Shown here: piece by piece, positions 1-45,919 of the stretch
How the letters are laid out: each line of letters starts with the position of its first letter
How positions within the stretch are numbered: position 1 is the first letter of the stretch
Assembly (NCBI GenBank): GCA_020891255.1
Contig: BQFW01000008.1
Location: forward strand, 1,736,001-1,800,000
DNA: 64,000 nucleotides
Direction: 5' to 3'
From: Entomortierella parvispora E1425
Lineage: Eukaryota; Fungi; Mortierellomycota
The notes under the pieces: model-generated
What the model was told of the DNA's origin: nothing
Seen by the model: the letters and a program-made list of their open reading frames with translations, nothing else
Databases searched by the model: none
Program-made: the position numbers and the translations under genes

Positions 1-331
1 CATACTCTCTAGATGTTTACGCATACATTCGATATCATTTCCTCTAGATCTCCAAGAGTCCGTTGGGGGCCCATCCAAACTGGTCATTGACAGTCGCCTC
101 TATGCCTGGGCTGTCGGGCGTGAATTTTCGATCTAACTCCTGCGTGTTCTCAGGCACCTGCCCATGTCCACCTGCCCATGTCCGCCTGCCCATGCCTTGT
201 ATATCGCCTCGATTTTTTTGCGGCATTAAAATTAAAATGGAAACAATGCGTTTAATGTTGGAGGTTCTATTATACATTTGTATGGAAGGAATATATGAGG
301 AGAGAGAGAGAGAAGAGGAAGCAACACTTCC

Positions 332-985
332 TTATGCAGTGGTGGTAGTGGTGGCAGTAGAGTTCTCGGAAATATCCATCATGGCCTCCTTTGCCTTCTT
401 GGACTTGGTGTCAGCCCTCTGAAGTCCTGCTGCTGCGTCCGCCTCCGCCTGAGTATAAGGCTCCTCCTTCAACAGCTTTACTCTATTTCGACAAAAACAA
501 TTTGGGATTTGAAAATGTTAGAGACCATGATACATCAGTCGGTCCATGCTGTAGCTTCTGTGCTCTTTCTTTTCCTACCTCTTCTTGTGGATCTTTCCTT
601 TCTGATGTTCCTCGAGCGACACCTTGTTGATGTGGTGCTTACTATGTGGTAGGAGAGGAGAGAGGGAAAGGAGAGAGAAAGAGGGGGAGAAGAGTAGAGT
701 TAATCCTTTGCTCGCCCGTTTCAATTATCCGCTCGATGCTAAAAGTTGAATCCAGCCAAGAGTGGATCAGCTCCATAAAACGACAACATACGCGCAAGGG
801 ATGCAGTAGAACTGGCCAAGACCGGGCAACTCTGGGTCCAACTCAGGCTTCTCGAACTTTGCAGCGTTTTCAGGCTGGATATCACCATGGATCTGGTCGA
901 GATCACGCATATAGCGCTTTGTGCGGTATTTGCGCTGAATATCGCGGATTCCCTTGTGCACTCTTGAGCGGCGAAGACGTCCCAT
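332..985 (-). CDS. BUD20: Bud20/ZNF593 C2H2 zinc-finger ribosome (60S) biogenesis factor, 3 exons
   Basis: Spliced translation [33 protein letters not shown]...[12 protein letters not shown]|[21 protein letters not shown]|[19 protein letters not shown]; GT-AG introns; stop TAA at 332-334. Confidence 0.92.
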
Positions 986-23305: not shown

Positions 23306-25133
23306 ATGAAGCGTGAATACGACGACGATACTACCGTCTCGCCTGCTGTCGAGATGGCCTACAAGAGTGACCCCATGATGGCTGCTGTCCACAGCTCACT
23401 TCACCCTCACAACAAGGAGGCTACCCATATGACCGAGGTCATCGAGGGCGATGGTCGTGAGCCAACCCTCGAGGAGGAGAGCACCCTCCGCAGGGTCGCT
23501 GATCACATCCCTGCTTCTGCCTGGTTGGTTGTCGTGGTCGAGTTCTGTGAACGTTTCACCTACTATGGTCTCTCGGGTCCATTCCAGAACTACATCCAAT
23601 ACCCATATACCTCAGAGCGCGGAGCTGAGCATCCCGGTGCCATTGGCAAGGGCCAGCAGACCGCCACAGCTCTCAACTACTTTTTCCAATGTAGGTTTCA
23701 CAGATCGCTGTTTTGAATTGGCTGCGCTGCGAATCTTTACTGATAATTTTTTGCTCTACATTACTTTAGTCTTCTGTTATGTCACTCCTATTCTCGGAGC
23801 CATTGTTGCTGACCAGTACCTGGGCAAGTACAAGACCATTTGCGTCTTCTGCGGCATCTACATGCTCGGAGTCTTGGTCTTGACCTTGACTTCCATCCCC
23901 GTTGCTATCCTCCACGGCGCTGCCTTGCCCGGTCTTGTCATTGCCATGGTCATCATCGGTTTGGGTACCGGAGGTATCAAGGCCAACGTTTCCCCTATGG
24001 TTGCTGAGCAGTACACCGGCACCAAGCCTACCATCAAGACCCTCGAGACTGGTGAGAAGGTCATTGTCGACCCCAATGTCACTGTCCAGTCTATTTTCAA
24101 TTGGTTCTACTGGTCGATCAACTTGGGTTCCCTCTCTGCTATCATTACCACCAACGCCGAGAAGTACTACGCCTTCTGGTTGGCTTACTTGATCCCCTTG
24201 CTCATGTTCAATGGTGCCGTCTTGGCTCTTTGGTGGGGCAAGGACAAGGTTGTCAAGACCCCTCCTCGTGGATCCGTCTTGTTGGAAGCCTTCCGTGTCT
24301 TTGGCATTGCCATGAAGAACGGTAACAACCTCGACGCTGCCAAGCCCTCTGAGATCCAAGCCCGCATGCCCGAATCCGACCTTGCCTTTGTTACCTGGGA
24401 CGACGTCTTCATTGATGAGCTCCGCCTCACCCTCAAGGCCTGCTCCGTCTTCTGCTTCTTCCCCTTGTACTGGGTCATTTACAACCAGATCACCACCAAC
24501 TTGACCTCCCAAGCCGGTACCATGCTCTTGTACGGAATCCCCAACGATGTCGTCAACAACATTGATCCCATTGTCTTGATCATCTTCATCCCCATCTTTG
24601 ATAAGATTGTCTACCCTGGTTTCCGTCGCATGGGTTTGGAGCTCAAGCCTGTCACCCGTATCTCCCTCGGTTTCTTGTTCGCTGCCATTGCCATGGCCTG
24701 GACCGCCATTGTCCAGCACAAGATTTACATCACCGGCCCCAACTACGCTTGCACTCTTTGCGATCCCAACCAGACCCCCAACAACGTCTCGATCGCTTGG
24801 CAAATTCTTTCATACTTCTTCATTGCCATCTCTGAGATCTTTGCCTCCATCACTGGTCTCGAGTTTGCATTCACCAACGCCCCCGCAACCATGAAGTCTG
24901 TGGTCATGTCCATCTTCTTGTTCATGAACTGTGCCGGTGCCTTGCTCGGCTTTGCCTTCTTGCCCTTGACCAAGGATCCTTTGCTTCTCTGGATGTACAC
25001 CGGTTTGGGTGTTGCTGCTTTCATTATTTCGGCCGTCATCTACTACTTGTTCCGTGATTACGACAAGACCATGATTGCTGAGAAGTTGGCCCTTCAGGCC
25101 AAGTACGATGCCAGGGCTGAGAAGGACCTCTAA
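23306..25133 (+). CDS. PTR2: POT/PTR family proton-dependent oligopeptide transporter, one intron near 23691-23769
   Basis: ExxERFxYYG motif (EFCERFTYYG), GAIVADQYLGKYKTI, GTGGIKANVSP, FYWSINLGS, EIFASITGLEFAFTNAP; about 12 hydrophobic segments. Confidence 0.95.
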
Positions 25134-25217
25134 AAAAACGCACTTAATATTGCACCTATCCCATCGTCATCTCAAGGACGCTTAGCTCCTTTGTAATAAA
25201 TTGTATTCTACATTTTT

Positions 25218-27482
25218 TCAATTTAATTTCTCGGTCTCTAAAGTGTATTGCTCGATTGCCTCGCTCAGCCCAGGTAGAGATGATGAGCGCTGGATATCGC
25301 AAATTCGGACCATAAACGGCGTAGTTGCGAACATCGAGGGAGTCGTACTTGGGTATATTGTGGTGCGAACTGCTGAGAACTATAAAAACGAAAATGCAAG
25401 ACGATTGAGTTAGACAAGGTCCTCATTCCATTCAGATTTCAGCACCCAATGGCGTCAGTTTTGTTACCATTGCTTGCCAGGGAATAGGGCCGCCTTGACT
25501 CATGTAGAGACCCAAGGCACAAATCAAATCTGCCATTACAACAGCATTCAAAGAGAGAACGGATCGAAAGCTCCCCAACTTCGCAGACAAAAGAGAATCG
25601 AAGCTTGTTCGAGACTCCTCGATTTCACAGTAGGCAGAGCTGATGATATACAGTTCCTTCAAGAAGCTTTGAACATGATATACAAGGCTTGCCCGGTATT
25701 GGTCTGTATCACATTCTAAAAAGAGCTCTGCTATGATGGCGGGGATGACTGACGGCTTTGTCTCTACCAATCGCGTGACCTCCAGCTCCTTAAAGTGTTT
25801 AGAAATCAGCAGCAACAAAAGATGCCGATGAGTCCAGCATGCAGCGCTGACAAGAAAGAGCAGCCTCCTTCTGAGGGTTAACTCCGTAGGTCCTTTTGAT
25901 TGAAGTATATATCGACGTCCAGCTTCTTGTAATTGTGTCAAAGTGGTGTCTCGACAGCTAATATCAGTTTTCGTTCCTGCCTTTCCAAGTAGACCTCTTG
26001 CTGTAGAAAGAACGTCCGTTATTAAATCGCCTCCGAAGGTCGCTACTGGGTTGCCTCCATAATCCTTCCCATTTTGCAGAGTCCATTTGACGAGTAGAGA
26101 GCATAGCCGAGAGAACCGCCAATCAGGGACTTCTGCTGCTATCTCTGTCAGACTTTGCAAGAATAGCTCCACAGGATAGCAACCCATGTCTAGTGACTCT
26201 GTCATCGCCACCAGGAAGCGTGAGCTCTCAGCGTGCTTTGTCAATGGATCCTCCATATTAAGCGACGAGAGATGTTGTTGACCTGCAAAAGTCTCAAGGG
26301 AACGTGTGATGCAGCGCACAATGACCTGTTGTCGAATCAGTGGTGATATAGTCCACAGTCTAGTTTGATATGATGAATAACAACAATAAGAATCTGGAGT
26401 ATCACTCTCTACAGAGTACAGCTTCATTATTTCGTACTTCATCAACCGTTTGTTATCAAGGCAATATGGAGCAGCCATGACGCAATCCTGCTGTTTCCTA
26501 ACGCTGTCGACAAACGTTGGATCGAGTACCTGGTCAAGAGAAGCATCGCGACTTTTTTTCGATCCCATTCTGGACAGACTGAATGCTAAATCAACCACTC
26601 CCGCCACCAAGGTTTGCGATCTGACATCGCCGACCAACGGTGAACACAATCCTGATAGCCCGAATGTCCAGCAGGGCTATATGTAAAATACATTCTTGAT
26701 CAGTATTTCAGCCTCCATAGGAATCAGTTTCATGACGACATTGAGATGCTTACCAAGGCCTTCCTGTGTGTCTGCTCTCGATCAGATTTGGCGAGTGCAT
26801 CTACAATTAACTGTAGTTTTCTTGCCAAAATTGAAAATAACTCGGTAAACTCCCGCTCCTTCATCTCCTCGGTAGAGACTAAAAAGAGATCTTCAAATGG
26901 ATCTAGCTTGCTTCCTGGATCCCTGTCTGTCATGAATATATCCTTTAAGCGAGCCGTGCACCAGGCTTCTGCTTTTGATTTCTGCTCTCGAACATGTTGT
27001 TTCTGCCATGATGTCCAGTCAGAATAATCCCGAGTTCCAGTTTGACAAGAATAGCCGACCACGGCTTGAATCAATAAACAATCGATGGCCTTTGAGCTCA
27101 AGACAACGGGATTCCTACATAGTCTGTAGAGGAGTGGCCCAAGAGTTGGATAGAGCTGGGAGGGCGGGCCACCGGCTCGCGTCCGGTCAATCGTGTCATG
27201 AGATTCACCCAGACTCCTTTGATGTTTTGTAATGCTTTCGCCCAGATGCTGCAAGTGGGGTTGAATTTGTTCCAGAAACGCTTGTAGGTCAGGTAAACAC
27301 GAAGTGATTGAAGCTGTGGCCGCGGCACGACTAGAGAATGTAGTAGATTAGGTCAATCAAATTACAGTGGCTTTACGAGCATCTTCCAGGAACAAGCATG
27401 AATAGCAGCATTACTCTTGCTTGGAGCATCGTTCTAAGAATGAAAGAAACTCCTTTGCTCGAGCTTCAATATCCTGATCCAT
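25218..27482 (-). CDS. 671-aa helical protein resembling Fanconi anaemia group C protein (FANCC), 4 exons (27482-27415, 27330-26754, 26676-25468, 25379-25218)
   Basis: GT-AG introns; exons total 2016 nt in one frame; several colinear blocks match remembered human FANCC ([18 protein letters not shown] vs [26 protein letters not shown] vs [19 protein letters not shown] vs EILQPEFFEAV). The gene is well supported; the identity is recalled, not searched. Confidence 0.72.
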
Positions 27483-29511
27483 TCCATGTGCGGCTGTTCG
27501 CGGCTGCGATGGCGAGGCGACTGCAGGTTGATTGTCTAGGGCGAGCAGAGGTTCAATGAGAGGTTTGGGAAGGAGCGTTTTTTATTTTTTTTTTGGTGGC
27601 AAATCGGAGTCGTGAGTGACTTCCAGGATCTCGCGTCGATTTTTTTTCCCAGTTGTCACAGCTTCTGACTGAAGACAAACTGCCCCCTTTGCGGTACCTT
27701 CCCTTGACTATTCCTGCGAAATTGCAGCAAGACTCAGACAGGTCATGTGTGAGTTGTCAATGGTGCACAAAAGAGATTCTTCATCGCTAGATAGTGGCCC
27801 AATCTTGTGTTCTCTGAAGCACTTTCTGAAGATGGTACATGCACTCTCTAAACCCGTGCCTAAGGAACAAACCAGGGTGGTTTCGAAAGATACAAACACA
27901 AACTGTCGCAGTGGACACCATTGTCTGACTTTCACATCCCTCCCATTCACTCACTTGGGTTGGGGGCAATATCCACGTCAGGGATGTTGCTATGCAAAAA
28001 GTGAAAAAACGAGAAAACGAAAATCGACGAAAGAGATGAAAGAGACGTAGACAGATATGTTGGACAGCAGCTTGCGAAAAGGGAATCTCTTATCCCAAGA
28101 AAGCGCTTGCTTTTTGCTAACCAGCCCGGCCGGGCGTTGCATTGTACACACACACAAAAATGCCCCAAAGGACAAGACTATCTAGGTTTTTACCCACCAG
28201 AGCTCAAAATACCTTATTTTGTTTGAGCCTCATCGGCAAACCTCAAAAAAGGATGACTATTGGCTCGCTGTCATTGCTGTCCTCATGCCCCTTGCAGAAG
28301 GTGGGACAGCTCACTGCTGGGAAGGATGTATGTACTGGGCTGGTTCGAGGGCGCAAAGCGAGCAACTGAGGCCTGAACCGCCACACCTTCATTGTCGCGT
28401 CTTGTTCCACAGTTTGATTCGAGTTCACAGTCATCGTTGTTGATGAGAATCTTCTCTTGCTCGCTGCTCTCTGCCTCTCTCAGGGTGTAAACAAACAGGG
28501 GAAGGGGGAAGTAAATCTGCCAGTGGGAGCATTGTGCGATAACAGTATGCAACGATCCTCTCTTTCATCCAATGTTGGCTTCTCTAGATAGCACTTTGGC
28601 CCTCATCCGCGATCTGGCCAGATAATCAATTTTATGTGGGAACCATCCCAGCCTTTGGTAGTTAAATTGTGGACGGGGGGTCATTGAAGGCGATACAGCC
28701 AAGGGCACACACTCATTTTCGAATTTTTGTTTTGTTATGTTGCTGCCCTCCTCACAGTTGCAGTGGGACTAAGGGAAGGTTGTGTTTGTGTGTGCAACAA
28801 AACTCGACCCTGTCCACTTTCCAGGGAATGGAAAGGAAAGTTAAAAGACAAAAACAGACCAGACGTAGGTTCGAAAGGACCTGGACGCCATCGGATGAAG
28901 TTGTTCACGCACAAATCACTGGCGATTTTGGGGGTCAACATATTATGAGCTGTCCGGTGACGGTGGAAGAGCCAAGTCGCGAAAGGAAATGAAAGGGTAA
29001 AAACAAGGCACAAATCTCTCGAACGAACCAGAGGCGGAGGGACTGTCGAGCGGAACAACGATGAATGAAGAGAAAAGAAAGGCTCTTGTTGTTGTTTTGT
29101 TGTTGTCTATCTGTCTGTCTGCTGTCTGTCACACACACACAAACACCCACGCCTTGTCCAATCCAACACCAATGCCTGAACTGTGCCTGAGTGAATGAGA
29201 GCAAAGAGCGAGTCTGGTTCTTTGCCATCGGTCTATGCCGTACTGTACGTTGGCTGGGTGCATTCGATTATTAGAGTGTCGAGTTCTCTTGTCCGTTCGC
29301 GGACATCCTCTTTCATTTTTTTTTGTCTCTCTTCACTCTGTCCTCCACCCTTTTTTCTTTTTGTTCTTCACTCTCGTGCCTTATCAATACCCCTGCATCC
29401 ACGGCGCTATTTCTTCTCCCTCGCCTGATCTACCCCTACTCTCTACCCTACTTCAGTTCTCCGCCAAGTACACCATCATCCCCTCAATTCACAAAACCCC
29501 ACAGCTATACC

Positions 29512-38156: not shown

Positions 38157-41100
38157 ATGGGCTCTTCCCTCTCGAAGTCAAAAAAGAAGAACCAGAACCG
38201 AAAGTCGGTTCCCTCAGCACCCCTGTCCTCACAGAAAAACCGGCATGCCCGACCCGCTTCCGAGCCCTCGACTGCCCAGAGCCCATCTCAATGGAATCAC
38301 CAACCCACAACTGCACGCCCACTGGCTGTGCAGGGAGAGGAAAGTGTTCACTACACTCCCATGAACAACTATGACCACAATGACCTTTACCAGGGCAAAG
38401 GCGGCGCAACGGCCAACGTTAGCTCCAGCAACAAGAAGAATCCCAGGAACAGTGGCGGTAACAACACACCACAGCACAGCAACGCGAACCAGCCTCGCAC
38501 CAGTACCTCCAACAGTCGACCCTCTTTCTCGTTGCTTCGTGGTCGAAAGAGCTCTCAGTACCCTCGCGATTCCGATGATGGCCACCAATACCAGCCCATC
38601 CTTCATATCAGTGCACCTATTATCGAGCCCATCATCACTACGGGAAGCAGCAATTACAGCCGGGATGTCACCTATGGATCGTTATCGACTGAGCAAGCAC
38701 CTCCTGCAAGAGTTTATAGATCGAGGCCAAGTCTCGATGCGAATAGATACCAGCAGCAGGTGAACGGCTACGTTGAGCCTCCAAGAGCTCCTGCAACAGG
38801 CGCCTACCGTGCTCCTGTACCAGCACTCCCTACCTCGACTCAAGCATCCTCCCTTTCGCCCCCTCCCCAAATATCCACCCCACCTTTACCATCTCTAGAG
38901 ACTTCTGCATTTCCCGCCCCACCCCAAAGCTACCCATACTCTCAAGAGCCACAACGTCTTTGGCGCGAGAGCCTTCGGAATGCAGCTGCTGTCGAGGGCC
39001 GGAAACCTGATACTGGTCTTGTTCGTTCCAACAGCAACGCCAGTTATACCAGCCACGGCAGTCAGTCTAGCGCTGCATCTTCACCCAGGGGCTACAGGAT
39101 GAATAAGCCTCTGTCCGCATCCACCTTTGGTACTTCAACCCTTTCATCCTCTTCCTCCAATGCCTCTCAATCGAGCTTTGGCATGAGTCGTCAGCGTTCG
39201 TTGAGAACCAACGCCATTCACCCCGAGAGTCCGCAATCTCGCCCCCGACACTTCCTTTCAGAGAGGACGGCTGACAATGCATCGATCATTTCATTGCCAG
39301 GCTCAAGGTTCAGAGAGGGCGGAGCTGGATATGACGACAACGTGGGCTCCGCAGAAGGGTCCATAGTGGGCTCTCCTCAACTGCATCATCACCATCATCA
39401 TCACCAGCAAAACCAATTTCCGTTCCCTTCTGGCGGAAGTAGTCCCAGTCTCTCTGGAGTCAACACACAAAACAATCGCCACGACAGTCAGTTCTCGAGT
39501 CCTCGTCAATCGATGGCGAGTTTGTCACCTTCTCAGGGGTGGTCGCATGTCGCTGCCATGCTCGGTCATCATGATCAGCTTGATGGTTCAACCTTTCCTG
39601 GGTCCATGTCGCCTGGAAGAACTCGCTTTGGCATCAAAACTGCATCATCTTCTGCACGCGAGTCCATCTCCTCGATTAGCACGGCCAACTACCAGTGGAT
39701 GGAGGAGCAGGGAGAGACTTCTGAGGCGCAGGATGCTCTTCACAGGGACTCTCTCTGGTCTCTCTTCAACTCGTCTTCAGCTTCTGATTTCAGTAACTCT
39801 ACCCCTTCCCGTACCAAGAACCTTTTGATCAGCCCCAGTCTTAGCCCCGAGCAATCAGCCTTGCAACGCCAGGAGCAACAGACACAACAGCATGCGCTCC
39901 TCAAATACTTCTTCAAGGGCAACTACCGCGCACCTGTGAACAAGGACGACCTTGGCTCTGTACTTGATGGTAAGTTTTTTGTTATGTAACATTGTTGTCA
40001 TTGTTGAATAGGGTCCCCTAGTTGGGTCATGACGACGCATTAACCTTGTTTCGCGTATGATGAAATGATAATCACGCCTGGTTCTAACTTATATTGCTGA
40101 ATCTCACTCCTTATTAGTCGGCTGCGGTACAGGAATGTGGATGAAGGACATGGCTCTTGAGTTCCCGTTGACAGAAATCCACGGAATCGATCTTGTTGTT
40201 CCAACACGTCGTCGTCGTCCCCGTGTAGCTGCACCTCTTCATTCTTCGTCTTCTCTGGGCAGGAGGGTGGACTCTCATGCCAGTGTTCAATCAGCAGGTT
40301 CCTCTGTCCGATCGTCAGATCCTTTCTTGAGCGGTTTACCAAGGGGCTCTGCTCGATCTGCCACCACCGGAGCTGCACCAGTGATGCTGGATTCTATGCC
40401 CAGCAACTGCTTCTTCCACAAAGGAGACATCACACAGGAGCTGCCATTTGGGGATAACACTTTTGACTATTGTCATGTCCGCTGGGTTCTCTGGGGTTAC
40501 CCTTTGAATGCCTTCCCTGAGCTCTTGACAGAATTAGTTCGCGTGACCAAGAAGGGAGGATGGATCGAGTTTGTGGATATGGATCCCTGTATCAAAAAGG
40601 CAAATGAGTCTGGATTGCGCATCAATGAATGGGTAAGAGGAGATGTGCTTTGATTTACTCCACGAGGCTTTGGCATCGATGTGGACAGCTCGAAACTGAC
40701 AGCGTTTTTAATGCCCAACTTGCTTATCCCCCACAGATCAAGACCGGATTAATCCACAGCAACATGGACCCTGATCTTGTCAAAACCTTACCTCGATTCC
40801 TAAAAGAGTTTTGTGATGCCACAATGGCCGCCACCGCACCTCGAGATCTCGTGCTGGATCCTAGTAACAAAAAAGAGTCCTTTATCCTGCCCTCTGCCCC
40901 CTATGGCCTTGATCATCTCAAGGTCTCCAAGATCTCGCTCCCCTTTGGCCCCTGGGGAGGTCAGGTCGGAGAGCTTTGGCAACAAAACTTTACCGCATTC
41001 TTGCGAGAGTTGGAGCCTATGATGATGGACGCTACTCTTTCTGGTCTCGTCATGGATCAATACCACCGTCAGTGTCAGCAGGAGTTGCAGCAGCTTTATG

Positions 41101-42566
41101 ATGCCTCTAACCAGCGGATGAGCTTTGACGGTAGCCTGGAGGGACAGCAGAGAATTTCCAACTTTGACCAGCGACTTTGCACACACAAGGCTTGGCACCA
41201 TTTGATCCAACAGCTGGTCAAGGACGCCAACCTCTCGTCAGACTCTGTTTCCTCTGGCGCATCCTCGTCCTCCTTCCCGACTCCATTCTCTCGTGGCCTG
41301 GGTCACCCGCCTATTCAGAACCCCACTCCGATGACATCCACATCCTCGATCAAGGAGATGCGGTCGTACAACAACGTTTACATCGCGTACGCTCAAAAGA
41401 TTGATTTGGAGGAGCTGAAGCAGCAACAGTTGTTCAAGCATCTGGAGGAGGAAGTGTTGAGTCCAAACCCCAACCATAGCGCTTCAGCAACTTTTGGCAC
41501 CATTGCCACTGCCGGTGCTGGGGCTATGGAAGGCGCGATGAGTATGGAGCAGGTCTTTGATAAGGCTGAACTCCACTCACCTACGGCATTTGAGGCCGAT
41601 AACAGACTTTCGATAAACGAGAACTTGAAATCAGAGGAGGCGGAAGCTGTCGCGTCTAGCGCTACCCCAGAGAGCATGGTCGATGAAGTCGAGGCAGCAC
41701 ACGAGCCAAAGACGACCACTGATTCCATTGAGCAAGATGAACACCCCATGGCCCAGTTTATTCAGCTTGAGGCCGAGTCTTCGGATGAGGAGGGTCAAGG
41801 CGAGGACACAATTGAGATCCTCAATCGAGTCTCATTGGATGACGTGCAACCAGCTTCTCAAGAACGTGCCAGCGAAAACGCTGAACGCGAGACAGAGGTC
41901 GAGGATCCTGCACTGCAAATGCTCAACGTGACAGACGACGGCGATGACAGCGATATCGAAAACGACGGTGATGATGACAAGGAGGAGGTCTTGCTCATGT
42001 TGGCTCCAGGGTCCCGATCCTCAACGGTTGAGATGGTGGAGCCAGAGCAAGAGTCGGCCCTGGAAGAAAAGCCTACCGTTATCATGATTGATGGTGATAC
42101 GGAGGAGGCCCCTGTTCCCGCCACGGAGGAGATCCCTGTTCCCGCCAAGGAGTCGCTCCCGGTCGAAGGATTAGCCTACGATAGCGAGACCAATGACAAT
42201 GCTCCCGTCATTGTGAAGGAGGCAGAGGAGCAAGGGGTCAGAGAGAACACAGTCAAGGGGGTTGTGGAGGAAGAAGCGAAAGAGACCCCAATTGCAAACA
42301 CTGCCGAGGAGGACCAAGTGGAAGAAGTTGCCGAGCCAGAGGACGAGGAGGAGGACGAGGAGGAGGACGAGGAGGACGAGAGTGAGGGAGAAGAGGACGA
42401 AAAGGAGACCGAGCCCGGGTCCAAGAAAGATTCTTTTGCCGTCGATAGCCAAGGAACACAGGAGGACGATACATCCAGGCCAAAGAGCGTGGATAGGACA
42501 TTGGCCGAGCTTCGCAAGCAAAAGGCGCTGAAGAAGAAGTCAAAGTCCAAGAAGTCTAAAAAATAA
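38157..42566 (+). CDS. Class I SAM-dependent methyltransferase (LaeA/Methyltransf_25-like) of about 1385 aa with disordered N-terminus and acidic C-terminus, 3 exons
   Basis: GNYRAP...VLD|VGCGTGMWMKDMALEFP..EIHGIDL (motif I), NCFFHKGDITQELPFGDNTFDYCH, ELVRVTKKGGWIEFVD; introns 39970-40117 and 40633-40736. Confidence 0.85.
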
Positions 42567-42857
42567 AAGTGACTGCCTTTCAGATTGTGTTTTTTTTTTT
42601 TTTTTTTTTGGTCCATCAATCAATCAATCAATCAATGGGACGAATGCAGGCAGACATGCATCAACTCTCGCAGGGCGGCCTTTGAAAAAAACATTCAATG
42701 CATTTGATTGCAATTGTTTTTTTTTTGGAGGGATTGTTTTCATTTTCTTGACCCTCGAGAGCTCTGTCTCATCATCCTTTTGCTCCTTCCTCTCCCTCCA
42801 TCCCTCCATCCCTCTTCCCGCCATTCATCCTCTTCATCCTTCTCGCTGCTTCATTCA

Positions 42858-45800
42858 ATGGATCATTCGGCACATCTGCAGCAGAACGGCAGGGCTGCAG
42901 GCGAGCAACACCAGCATCCGCTGGCACACCATCCTCATTCGCCGCACCCTCTGCAGCATCATCACCACCCGGTCCACCCCCATGCTCACTCACACCCTGT
43001 CCACCCACCCTCGGCATCATTCCATCATCATTCACACTCTCATCAGTCCCAGCACCAGCACCAGCACCACCAGCAGCACCAGCACCATAGCATGCATCAT
43101 CAACCGCATCCGCACCATCTCCGAGGACACCGGCACTCCACAGACTCTGCAGCAGCAGACACTCTGCTGATGCTTAGTGCCGCGGCCTTCATGGACCCTG
43201 CTGCAGCCCAGTCCGTCCTAGACCAACCTCAAGAGGACAAGCGTGGCCATCACTTTGGTCAAGGCCATCACCCTGCACACCAATCCAATCCACAAGCGCA
43301 CGGCCCTCGACGAGCCTCGCCCTCTCCTCCGCCGCTGCACCAAGGCCATGCCCGTCTGCCCATGGCCAAGACTGTCTCTGCACCTCCTCTGCAGTATCAT
43401 TCTTCCTCTTCCTCCTCGTCTGCATCGTCCCTTCCCCCCTTGCCCCGCTCTGCGAACCATCCCCTCAGAGAGCTTGGAGAGATCGAGTCGACAAGAGGAC
43501 ATCCCCTGTCCATCTCCATTCCCCACAGACAGCAGCACTCCAACGGTGCCAGCATGAGCAATCCACTCTCTGCTCACACAGTCTCTTCCCAGCCTGCCTC
43601 TCCCACAAGAGCCAGAGCTGTAGGATCTGCTGTGAGCATCTCTGCTGTCAATGCAAACAACTCGAGCTTGCCCATGGATCTGGACTCTCCCCACCCCAGC
43701 TCTAGTGCTCCAACCCCTGCAAAGGGCAATGGCATCAGCCAGGACGAGGACGAAGAGGAAGAGGAAGAGGACGAGGTCATGTCCGAAGGTGTTGTCCATG
43801 TGAACAAGACCCTGGCTCCCATTGCGTTGTCCCCTCAGAGCAAAGGTCCTCCAGCCAACTACTTCACCCATCCGCTCCCACCTTTGCCACAGTCCATCTC
43901 GACCCACAGTAACCATTGGTCGCAACAGCAACAGCAGCAACAAGACCAGCCAAAGACGCCAAGAACGCCCAAGCAACCTCGGACTCCAAAGACTCCGAAG
44001 ACCCCCCGACAGCCCAAGAAGAGCCAGAATGGACAGCGTGATTCCTCTGCAGACTTCTTCTATTCACCGTTCCCACTCTCCAGTTCGCCTGCCTCTTCAC
44101 CGTCGTCGCCGTCATCGTTCCATTCGCAGCTTCAGTTGCTCACTCATAACTTTGTGTCGATCCAACCTCATGCCTCGCCTACGAACCGATTCAGGAGGAC
44201 ACCTTCTGCCATCACCCCTGCCACGGCAACGCCCCCGTTCTCTCCACCAGCATCTCCGGGCGTCGAATTGATGCGAGAGACACCATTTTACCCAGGATCA
44301 TCTGCCAACACTTCACCGGTGAAAGATGGGTCTGCCAATCCTACGACCCCAACTTCGGCCGGTTTTCCACGGTCCTCCAGTGGAGCAACCACTCCTCAGA
44401 GGTCCCATTTCAAGCCCCGCTGGCACACTCAACCATACATGATGTTCCTGGCCTTGCGTGCCATGCCAGACCGGACGGCGGCCCGTCAGGAGTTAATCAT
44501 GGCCGCAGTGGAACTCGACAAGAAGTTTAGTGCAGAAAAGGGTCTCCCACGTGTCTTTACGGGCAAAGTAAGTTTCTCGGGCCTTAATGTCTCACACGAT
44601 CAAGAACAAAAAAGCTTGTTGGCTGACTGTTTTTTTTTATATGTCTGCCTTTCCCTCCATGTTAGACTCCGATGAATTCGGCCTCGGCCTGTTTGACCAA
44701 CAACGGTGACAAGTACTTTATTCCTTTCAAGCCAGAAGGTAGCAGGAGTACTCATTTCAGGCTCGCATATCAGCCTGGCAACTTTGACACCGCCGTCGGT
44801 GAATACAACGCGTGGATGGAGCAGCTTGTCCAACGGGATTGGCCTCTGTGCTTCGGAATCCCAAAGAGTCGTCAGCAGTCCGTGAAAGAAGATCCTGCTG
44901 GTGGACGTGATGGTGAATCAAATGATAAGAAGGAGGAAGGAAGACCAGAATTGCATCGCACACACTCATCTTTTGAGTCTAGAAAGCGCCTTCATGGTCA
45001 TACTGAGATGGAACAACACGAAGATGGCGATAATAGCAAAAAAGTCAAAGCCGAGATGGACATCAGCAAGGACGCTCCACAGCAGGACGAGTCTTTGGAA
45101 TCCACAGCTGCAGAAGACAGTAAGGTCACTGACAAGCTCCAGTTGCTCGATCTTCAAAAGAATGGATCCTGCCCTCCTACGCCGACAACAGGGGTGGCCC
45201 CATATCCCAATCCCGAAAGCGACCGGTTTGCATTTGCGTTGGATCTTGGTCGAGGAACAGGCTCTCAATCTTTTTCCTTGCAAGATCGTTTGCAGGATCT
45301 GGATTTGAGTCAAGTGCCCACTAAACTGGAGGATATTGTGCGCGTGGACACGTCCTCGATCCCCAATGCAGGCATGGGACTCTTTGCTGTCAAGGATCTG
45401 CCTGCAGGAACACCTTTGGGATTCTATTTTGGTGTGCCCATGACCGAAAATGAGTTTGACTCTCTCAAGGACGGCGTCGGTCAGGCTTCTCAGTACTCAA
45501 TCATGTACCGCCGGACGGTCTTGGATGCGACGGATGAGAGCGGTCAGCCTTATACAGATCCTTTGGGTCGTCTTTACTGCCCTTTTCATTTCATGAACGA
45601 AGATCCCAATGGCAGCGTCTCTTTCATCACTGGCAGTGTTGTGAACCAAGTCATTTGTACAACAAATCGCGATGTCAAGGCCAACGAGGAGCTGTTTGTG
45701 TTCTATGGAAAGGAGATGGACAGACATTGGGCTGCACAAGGTCAAGACGGTCTTGGGAATGACGGATCTGATTCCAGCAGGAAGAGCCGAGGTGGTTCAC

Positions 45801-45919
45801 GGTCCAGGGCATCCTCTCCATCAAGGAAACCATCCTCAACTGCTGCGGCGATGAGTGTTGATGATGCCGGACGGCCGAGGCGAGAGACTGCCTACAAACC
45901 TATTCGATATACTCGCTAG
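42858..45919 (+). CDS. Chromatin-type protein of about 987 aa: His-rich IDR, HARE-HTH-like winged helix, C-terminal SET domain; 2 exons (intron 44568-44665)
   Basis: SET motifs VDTSSIPNAGMGLFAVKDLPAGTPLGFYFG, FMNEDPN, TNRDVKANEELFVFYG; winged-helix-like block ...GK|TPMNSASACLTNNGDKYF...HFRL. Confidence 0.83.

Follow-up and report, generated by a model that had tools for sequence, protein, structure and literature searches.

Do early-diverging fungi encode FANCC, a scaffold subunit of the Fanconi anaemia (FA) core ubiquitin ligase? All fungi are said to lack the gene in one recent survey (Barua et al. 2024, PMC11061109), whereas another study holds that in most fungal lineages FANCC was either lost or diverged beyond recognition (Singh et al. 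2023, PMC10085685). The question is raised by a locus in the soil fungus Entomortierella parvispora E1425 (Mortierellomycota), at positions 25218-27482 of a 64,000-nucleotide stretch of contig BQFW01000008.1 (contig positions 1,736,001 to 1,800,000; hereafter the window). An earlier note on this DNA, made from its letters without database searches, had placed a candidate fungal FANCC here with correct coordinates and strand: the gene lies on the minus strand, with its start ATG at 27482 and its stop TGA at 25218-25220. In the databases the product is matched by EMPS_06221 of E. parvispora, a 645-amino-acid (aa) “hypothetical protein” that is referred to below as P0001. The locus is likely to be an intact gene for a diverged Mortierellomycota orthologue of FANCC, an all-alpha solenoid of 645 aa that would belong to the scaffold of the FA core ubiquitin ligase. 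Sequence profiles speak for its identity as FANCC, and predicted structure does so more strongly.

Similarity to FANCC in sequence and structure

The best Pfam family for P0001 is Fanconi_C (PF02106), which aligns with aa 83-117 over profile positions 64-98 (16.2 bits, E 0.0046). Other members of the protein family also match it: the Modicella orthologue (P0014) scores 27.1 bits (E 2.3e-6), over the gathering cut-off of 25, the E. chlamydospora orthologue (P0003) scores 22.8 bits (E 4.7e-5), and weaker matches are present in two more members. Mapped through the family alignment, these matches are collinear across members and extend over aa 30-246 of P0001, corresponding to profile positions 33-210. 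When members were scanned singly against Pfam, neither COBRA1 nor any other helical family was matched consistently. Matches of the N-terminal part to Pfam DUF5063 (E 0.026 and 0.0045) were judged to be noise.

A similar comparison can be made with a profile of the family itself. Run against 177,635 distinct PDB sequences, this profile retrieves a single notable match, human FANCC (7KZP chain C; E 0.006), and a second, realigned family profile retrieves the same protein more weakly (E 0.044). The most conserved motif of the family, at aa 83-100 (27099-27152, minus strand; coordinates derived from the exon map), is aligned by HMMER with human FANCC (7kzp_C). A second block shared with FANCC, at aa 222-243 (26593-26658, minus strand), lies in a sub-threshold second HMMER domain, and the part of the P0014 Fanconi_C match that covers profile positions 144-209 maps to aa 182-245 of P0001, spanning this block. 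These alignments bear on the earlier note, which had set blocks of the protein beside human FANCC. Its first two blocks proved to be real human FANCC sequence, which HMMER places against the family profile in the same register (E 0.006; E 0.044); its third (LSGLCSPLV...) is reproduced as well, but in the second domain, which is not significant on its own, albeit inside the P0014 stretch that matches Fanconi_C above threshold. The similarity to FANCC goes beyond chance, yet for P0001 it is marginal when judged from sequence alone.

Predicted structure provides the stronger comparison. An AlphaFold2 (AF2) model of P0001, built with a 23-sequence family alignment, has a mean predicted local distance difference test score (pLDDT) of 79 and a predicted template-modelling score (pTM) of 0.66, and is all-helical, in keeping with the helical protein described in the earlier note. 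When the model is searched against the PDB with Foldseek, the top match is human FANCC (7kzp_C; E 1.1e-6, template-modelling (TM) scores 0.41/0.46, 662 columns), followed by NELF-B (E 9e-4, TM 0.21). Superposition on FANCC, which the earlier note had proposed as a check, thus yields a full-length match between all-alpha solenoids in the same order, at a global TM score below 0.5. In the Swiss-Prot portion of the AlphaFold database (AFDB), the first four matches are FANCC from rat, human, mouse and cow (E 4.7e-7 to 1.9e-5), aligned over residues 1-645 against 1-558, after which NELF-B appears at E 2e-3. The best match among AFDB clusters is an uncharacterized 551-aa protein, A0A068S6G1 (E 1.5e-7, TM 0.46/0.53), which is presumably a member of a Mucorales proteome; the clusters return eight rows at E <= 1e-3, of which just one carries a name, “Fanconi anemia group C protein homolog”. 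A search of the ESM Atlas by shape likewise places a FANCC cluster first (TM 0.40/0.52), with a V-type ATPase subunit H cluster next (TM 0.31/0.36), and FANCC is also first in an unbiased VIA search.

A second model, restricted to residues 166-645, has a pLDDT of 83.6 and a pTM of 0.83. Ranked by Z score, its first match is again FANCC (16.6, root-mean-square deviation (rmsd) 7.3, chain 132..556), and NELF-B is second (12.1). Searches with language-model features serve as leads only: for the whole protein they are ambiguous, with NELF-D first and FANCC third (0.92-0.93), while the N-terminal 300 aa put FANCC in first place (0.88).

Several points weigh against the identification. P0001 itself falls under the Fanconi_C gathering cut-off (16.2 against 25 bits). 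Identity to FANCC is 12-14%, and single-sequence phmmer searches of P0001, P0014 and P0003 against the PDB return no FANCC match, because the method is too insensitive at such identity. The main structural weakness is a global TM score to FANCC of 0.36-0.46, below 0.5, accompanied by a large global rmsd; values in this range are usual for long flexible solenoids and are not proof of the same fold. For residues 166-645, the Foldseek E-value places NELF-B (3.4e-4, TM 0.27) before FANCC (2.4e-3, TM 0.46). Judged by 3Di statistics, the C-terminal solenoid by itself thus separates the two families poorly, and much of the FANCC-specific signal must reside in the N-terminal third. Finally, the gene model is built on sequence signals and conservation only.

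Some of these points would also be expected of a lineage-specific Mortierellomycota helical-repeat protein with an unrelated function, in which the likeness to FANCC arose from solenoid convergence and one short chance motif. The sub-threshold Pfam score and the TM scores below 0.5 fit such a protein, as does the confinement of phmmer relatives to Mortierellomycota. This explanation is nevertheless unlikely, since FANCC comes first in five independent libraries and with two aligners, over the full protein and with the order preserved. Moreover, two orthologues carry significant, collinear Fanconi_C matches, and the family profile picks FANCC alone from the PDB.

The consistent runner-up, NELF-B (COBRA1), suggests a different candidate, namely a divergent NELF-B-like subunit of the negative elongation factor. 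Its first place in the Foldseek E-value ranking of the C-terminal 480 aa is consistent with that assignment, as are the high positions of NELF-B and NELF-D clusters in the language-model feature search. However, the Pfam COBRA1 family (PF06209) has no match in P0001 (E up to 10) or in any of 23 members of the family (E up to 1), TM scores to NELF-B are 0.21-0.27 as opposed to 0.41-0.46 for FANCC, and the NELF-B alignment is confined to residues 645 back to about 150, leaving the N-terminal domain with the FANCC motif unmatched. An elongation-factor subunit is therefore a highly improbable identity for the protein, and FANCC is the preferred one.

Gene model and family in Mortierellomycota

The FANCC-like gene is probably composed of five exons, all on the minus strand. 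Exon 1 (27415-27482, 68 nt) encodes aa 1-22 and two bases of codon 23, and the spliced translation that it opens is identical to P0001. It is separated by intron 1 (27331-27414, 84 nt, GTAATG..CTCTAG; G+C 0.39) from exon 2 (26754-27330), which encodes aa 23-215, comprises the N-terminal helical domain and holds the Pfam Fanconi_C match (E 0.005). Intron 2 (26677-26753, 77 nt, GTAAGC..ATATAG; G+C 0.35) is followed by exon 3 (26438-26676), which runs from aa 216 to about 295. Beyond a probable intron 3 (26360-26437), exon 4 (25468-26359) encodes the C-terminal solenoid, including the family-invariant DWR (aa 374-376) and LRRRL (aa 457-461). Intron 4 (25380-25467, 88 nt, GTAACA..TTATAG; G+C 0.40) precedes exon 5 (25218-25379), from which the final 53 aa and the TGA stop (25218-25220) derive.

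The status of intron 3 distinguishes this model from that of the earlier note, which had read a protein of 671 aa from four exons. Those exons (27482-27415, 27330-26754, 26676-25468 and 25379-25218) do join in frame through GT..AG introns to give exactly 671 aa, but the model is probably one intron short. The segment 26360-26437 is in frame and begins and ends as an intron would (GTACGA..AACTAG); read as coding sequence it contributes 26 aa, YEIMKLYSVESDTPDSYCCYSSYQTR, and EMPS_06221 is the same sequence as the 671-aa reading except that these residues are spliced out. At 78 nt it has the length typical of introns in this gene, and its G+C content is 0.33, compared with 0.35-0.40 for the other introns, 0.41 for exon 1 and 0.47-0.50 for the other four exons. 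Residues matching the 26-aa piece are present in none of 16 aligned homologues. Based on its length, in-frame GT..AG ends and low G+C, together with the splicing of P0001 and the absence of the piece from the homologues, the segment is best regarded as an intron, and the five-exon, 645-aa model is more likely than the four-exon one.

An out-of-frame ATG lies upstream, 5 nt before the start codon (27483-27487, ATGGAATGG), and opens a short overlapping reading frame that ends inside exon 1. Conceivably, this upstream ATG may reduce translation of the main frame.

An exhaustive phmmer search of 1.84 billion representatives returned 31 matches to P0001, and every named one is an uncharacterized protein of Mortierellomycota. 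The genera are Dissophora, Entomortierella, Gamsiella, Mortierella, Podila, Modicella, Lunasporangiospora, Lobosporangium, Linnemannia and Actinomortierella, and identity between genera is about 25-35%. Despite this divergence among sequences, conserved motifs can be recognized along the family: the N-terminal 15-residue motif, LSxLCxP, LDxxFV, the invariant DWR, and LRRRL. What is new here is a Mortierellomycota-wide family of about 30 proteins, all of them annotated as hypothetical. Protein searches through a word index retrieved less: the query with exon 3 as delimited in the earlier note found its own protein alone, and a query with the family alignment found its own protein and one 179-aa fragment. 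Known relatives were missed in these searches too, and FANCC of Mucorales or animals therefore lies beyond the reach of the index.

Two properties of the family deserve mention in their own right. Identity of about 25-35% among genera of a single fungal family amounts to unusually fast evolution, and the deposited models of many relatives are truncated or split (for instance, 525 versus 764 aa in Lobosporangium and 617 versus 708 aa in Gamsiella).

It could be asked whether the locus is a mis-predicted or decaying gene that yields no functional protein. RNA support for its transcription was not obtained, and the fast evolution of the family, with some 25-35% identity between genera, is what decay might produce. 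Yet the open frame is intact over five exons with canonical splice sites, full-length relatives with conserved motifs occur across the phylum (in more than 10 genera), and the AF2 model is confident, which requires a coherent, coevolving family. Decay or misprediction is accordingly extremely unlikely, and an intact FANCC-like gene remains the preferred reading.

Among four sequencing runs that carry the same species label, only a 38-nt piece of exon 1 (27419-27456) was matched. This piece differs by two mismatches from high-depth contigs, which derive from three runs of one sample under that label; the rest of the gene is not present there. The match is probably due to chance, or to a divergent or mislabelled sample.

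Neighbouring genes

Downstream of the FANCC-like gene, and convergent with it, is a gene for a PTR2/POT peptide transporter, the last open reading frame (ORF) of which encodes 560 aa (23451-25133, plus strand; Pfam E 1.9e-82). The stop codons of the two genes are 84 nt apart (25133-25220), so their 3′ untranslated regions must either overlap or be very short.

The window has 30 ORFs of at least 180 aa, and a Pfam scan of 20 of them revealed no further FA gene. The near-complete core that the earlier note had envisaged (FANCC, FANCE and FANCF plus FANCB, FANCL and FAAP100) is thus a hypothesis; its FANCB-FANCL-FAAP100 part has no support from this analysis, which yielded no evidence of any kind for FANCB or FAAP100. 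The ORFs that did match Pfam encode the PTR2 transporter, a Snf2/bromodomain ATPase, a KH protein, a kinase-ankyrin protein, a SET protein, a class I tRNA synthetase and a PP1-type phosphatase. Four successive long ORFs of 610, 645, 655 and 415 aa occupy 38157-45919 on the plus strand; the SET domain is in the last of these, and the first three have no Pfam match at E <= 1e-5. Together they probably represent one or two very large chromatin proteins.

Proposed role and comparison with known systems

FANCE binds FANCD2, and the FANCC-FANCE-FANCF (C-E-F) module presents the FANCD2-FANCI substrate to FANCL and UBE2T for monoubiquitination. A 3.1 A cryo-EM structure of the human core complex shows FANCC touching FANCE and FANCF as well as the RING ligase FANCL (Singh et al. 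2023, PMC10085685). The Arabidopsis counterpart, At3g60310, was identified by means of HHpred and structure modelling, at 16% identity to human FANCC; it pulls down FANCL and MHF2 and is part of a C-E-F module that, along with FANCM-MHF, limits class II crossovers (PMC10085685).

By analogy with these systems, a functional role for the fungal protein in a core complex is plausible. It would bind FANCE, which in turn would dock the FANCD2-FANCI substrate, as in the human complex and in Arabidopsis, and might also bind FANCF, if present, and the RING ligase FANCL. FANCD2-FANCI would thereby be positioned for monoubiquitination by UBE2T and FANCL at stalled forks or interstrand cross-links. Like the plant C-E-F module, the protein may in addition cooperate with FANCM-MHF in restraining class II meiotic crossovers. 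Several of the other components have been reported from the same lineage: Lobosporangium (Mortierellomycotina) expresses FANCD2, FANCI, FANCL, FANCM, UBE2T and MHF2, and a Linnemannia gamsii protein is included in a FANCE tree (Barua et al. 2024, PMC11061109). Partners that FANCC needs therefore exist in the lineage.

A broader proposal is that Mortierellomycota keep the whole C-E-F module, working with FANCL, UBE2T and FANCD2-FANCI. This would include a FANCF, which has never been reported in any fungus. The proposal is tentative, somewhat more doubtful than probable. If it is true, the “minimal FA complex” published for early-diverging fungi would be an artefact of searching at the level of BLAST, and transformable Mortierella species could serve as fungal models of how this module acts in both cross-link repair and crossover control.

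The identification bears on how FANCC is distributed among eukaryotes. Its treatment in the earlier note as an animal or vertebrate gene is outdated, since a plant C-E-F module and a FANCC from Rhizopus azygosporus (RCH79564.1; Mucorales) have been published, the latter named as a fungal FANCC (Singh et al. 2023, PMC10085685). The same study identified FANCC in plants and inferred the C-E-F module for the last eukaryotic common ancestor, which is deeper than the opisthokont ancestor to which the earlier note would have dated it; the Mortierellomycota protein leaves this inferred age unchanged. The proviso of that note, that an existing fungal FANCC would lower the novelty, applies in view of the Rhizopus protein of 2023. 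The survey that reported no fungal FANCC used BLASTp at E <= 1e-5 with queries taken from human, mouse, worm, Dictyostelium and yeast (Barua et al. 2024, PMC11061109), a method that is not expected to detect the Mortierellomycota family at 12-14% identity. A full-text literature search found no paper joining FANCC with Mortierella. The Mortierellomycota protein thus very probably contradicts the 2024 claim of fungal absence and extends the 2023 report on Mucorales to a second early-diverging lineage. The conflict between the two papers would then be settled on the side of retention, with support for a fungal loss of the FA core that was gradual and lineage-specific rather than for early absence. 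Mortierella alpina, which is industrially used and transformable and has the orthologue KAG9323976.1, would be a place to study C-E-F function outside animals and plants.

Among known proteins, NELF-B/COBRA1 (for example, PDB 8JJ6 chain A and 7PKS chain V) differs from the E. parvispora protein in giving no sequence-profile signal, in its TM scores of 0.21-0.27 and in leaving the N-terminal domain unmatched. Rhizopus RCH79564.1 is closer in kind, being likewise a FANCC of an early-diverging fungus that is missed by ordinary similarity searches and detected by profile methods alone; it belongs to Mucorales rather than to Mortierellomycota, and phmmer makes no link between the two lineages. Arabidopsis FANCC is a remote orthologue too, but one with an anti-crossover phenotype and pull-downs, whereas the fungal protein is known from its sequence and predicted structure. 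Compared with human FANCC (UniProt Q00597; PDB 7KZP chain C), to which it is 12-14% identical, the fungal protein is longer by about 90 aa and has low-confidence inserts at aa 65-74 and 120-165. Human FANCC is likewise an all-alpha solenoid of similar length, and the N-terminal motif (F/Y)PT(I/L)GxLLxxxCxNPxxL and the LSxxCxPL block are common to both proteins and occur in the same order.

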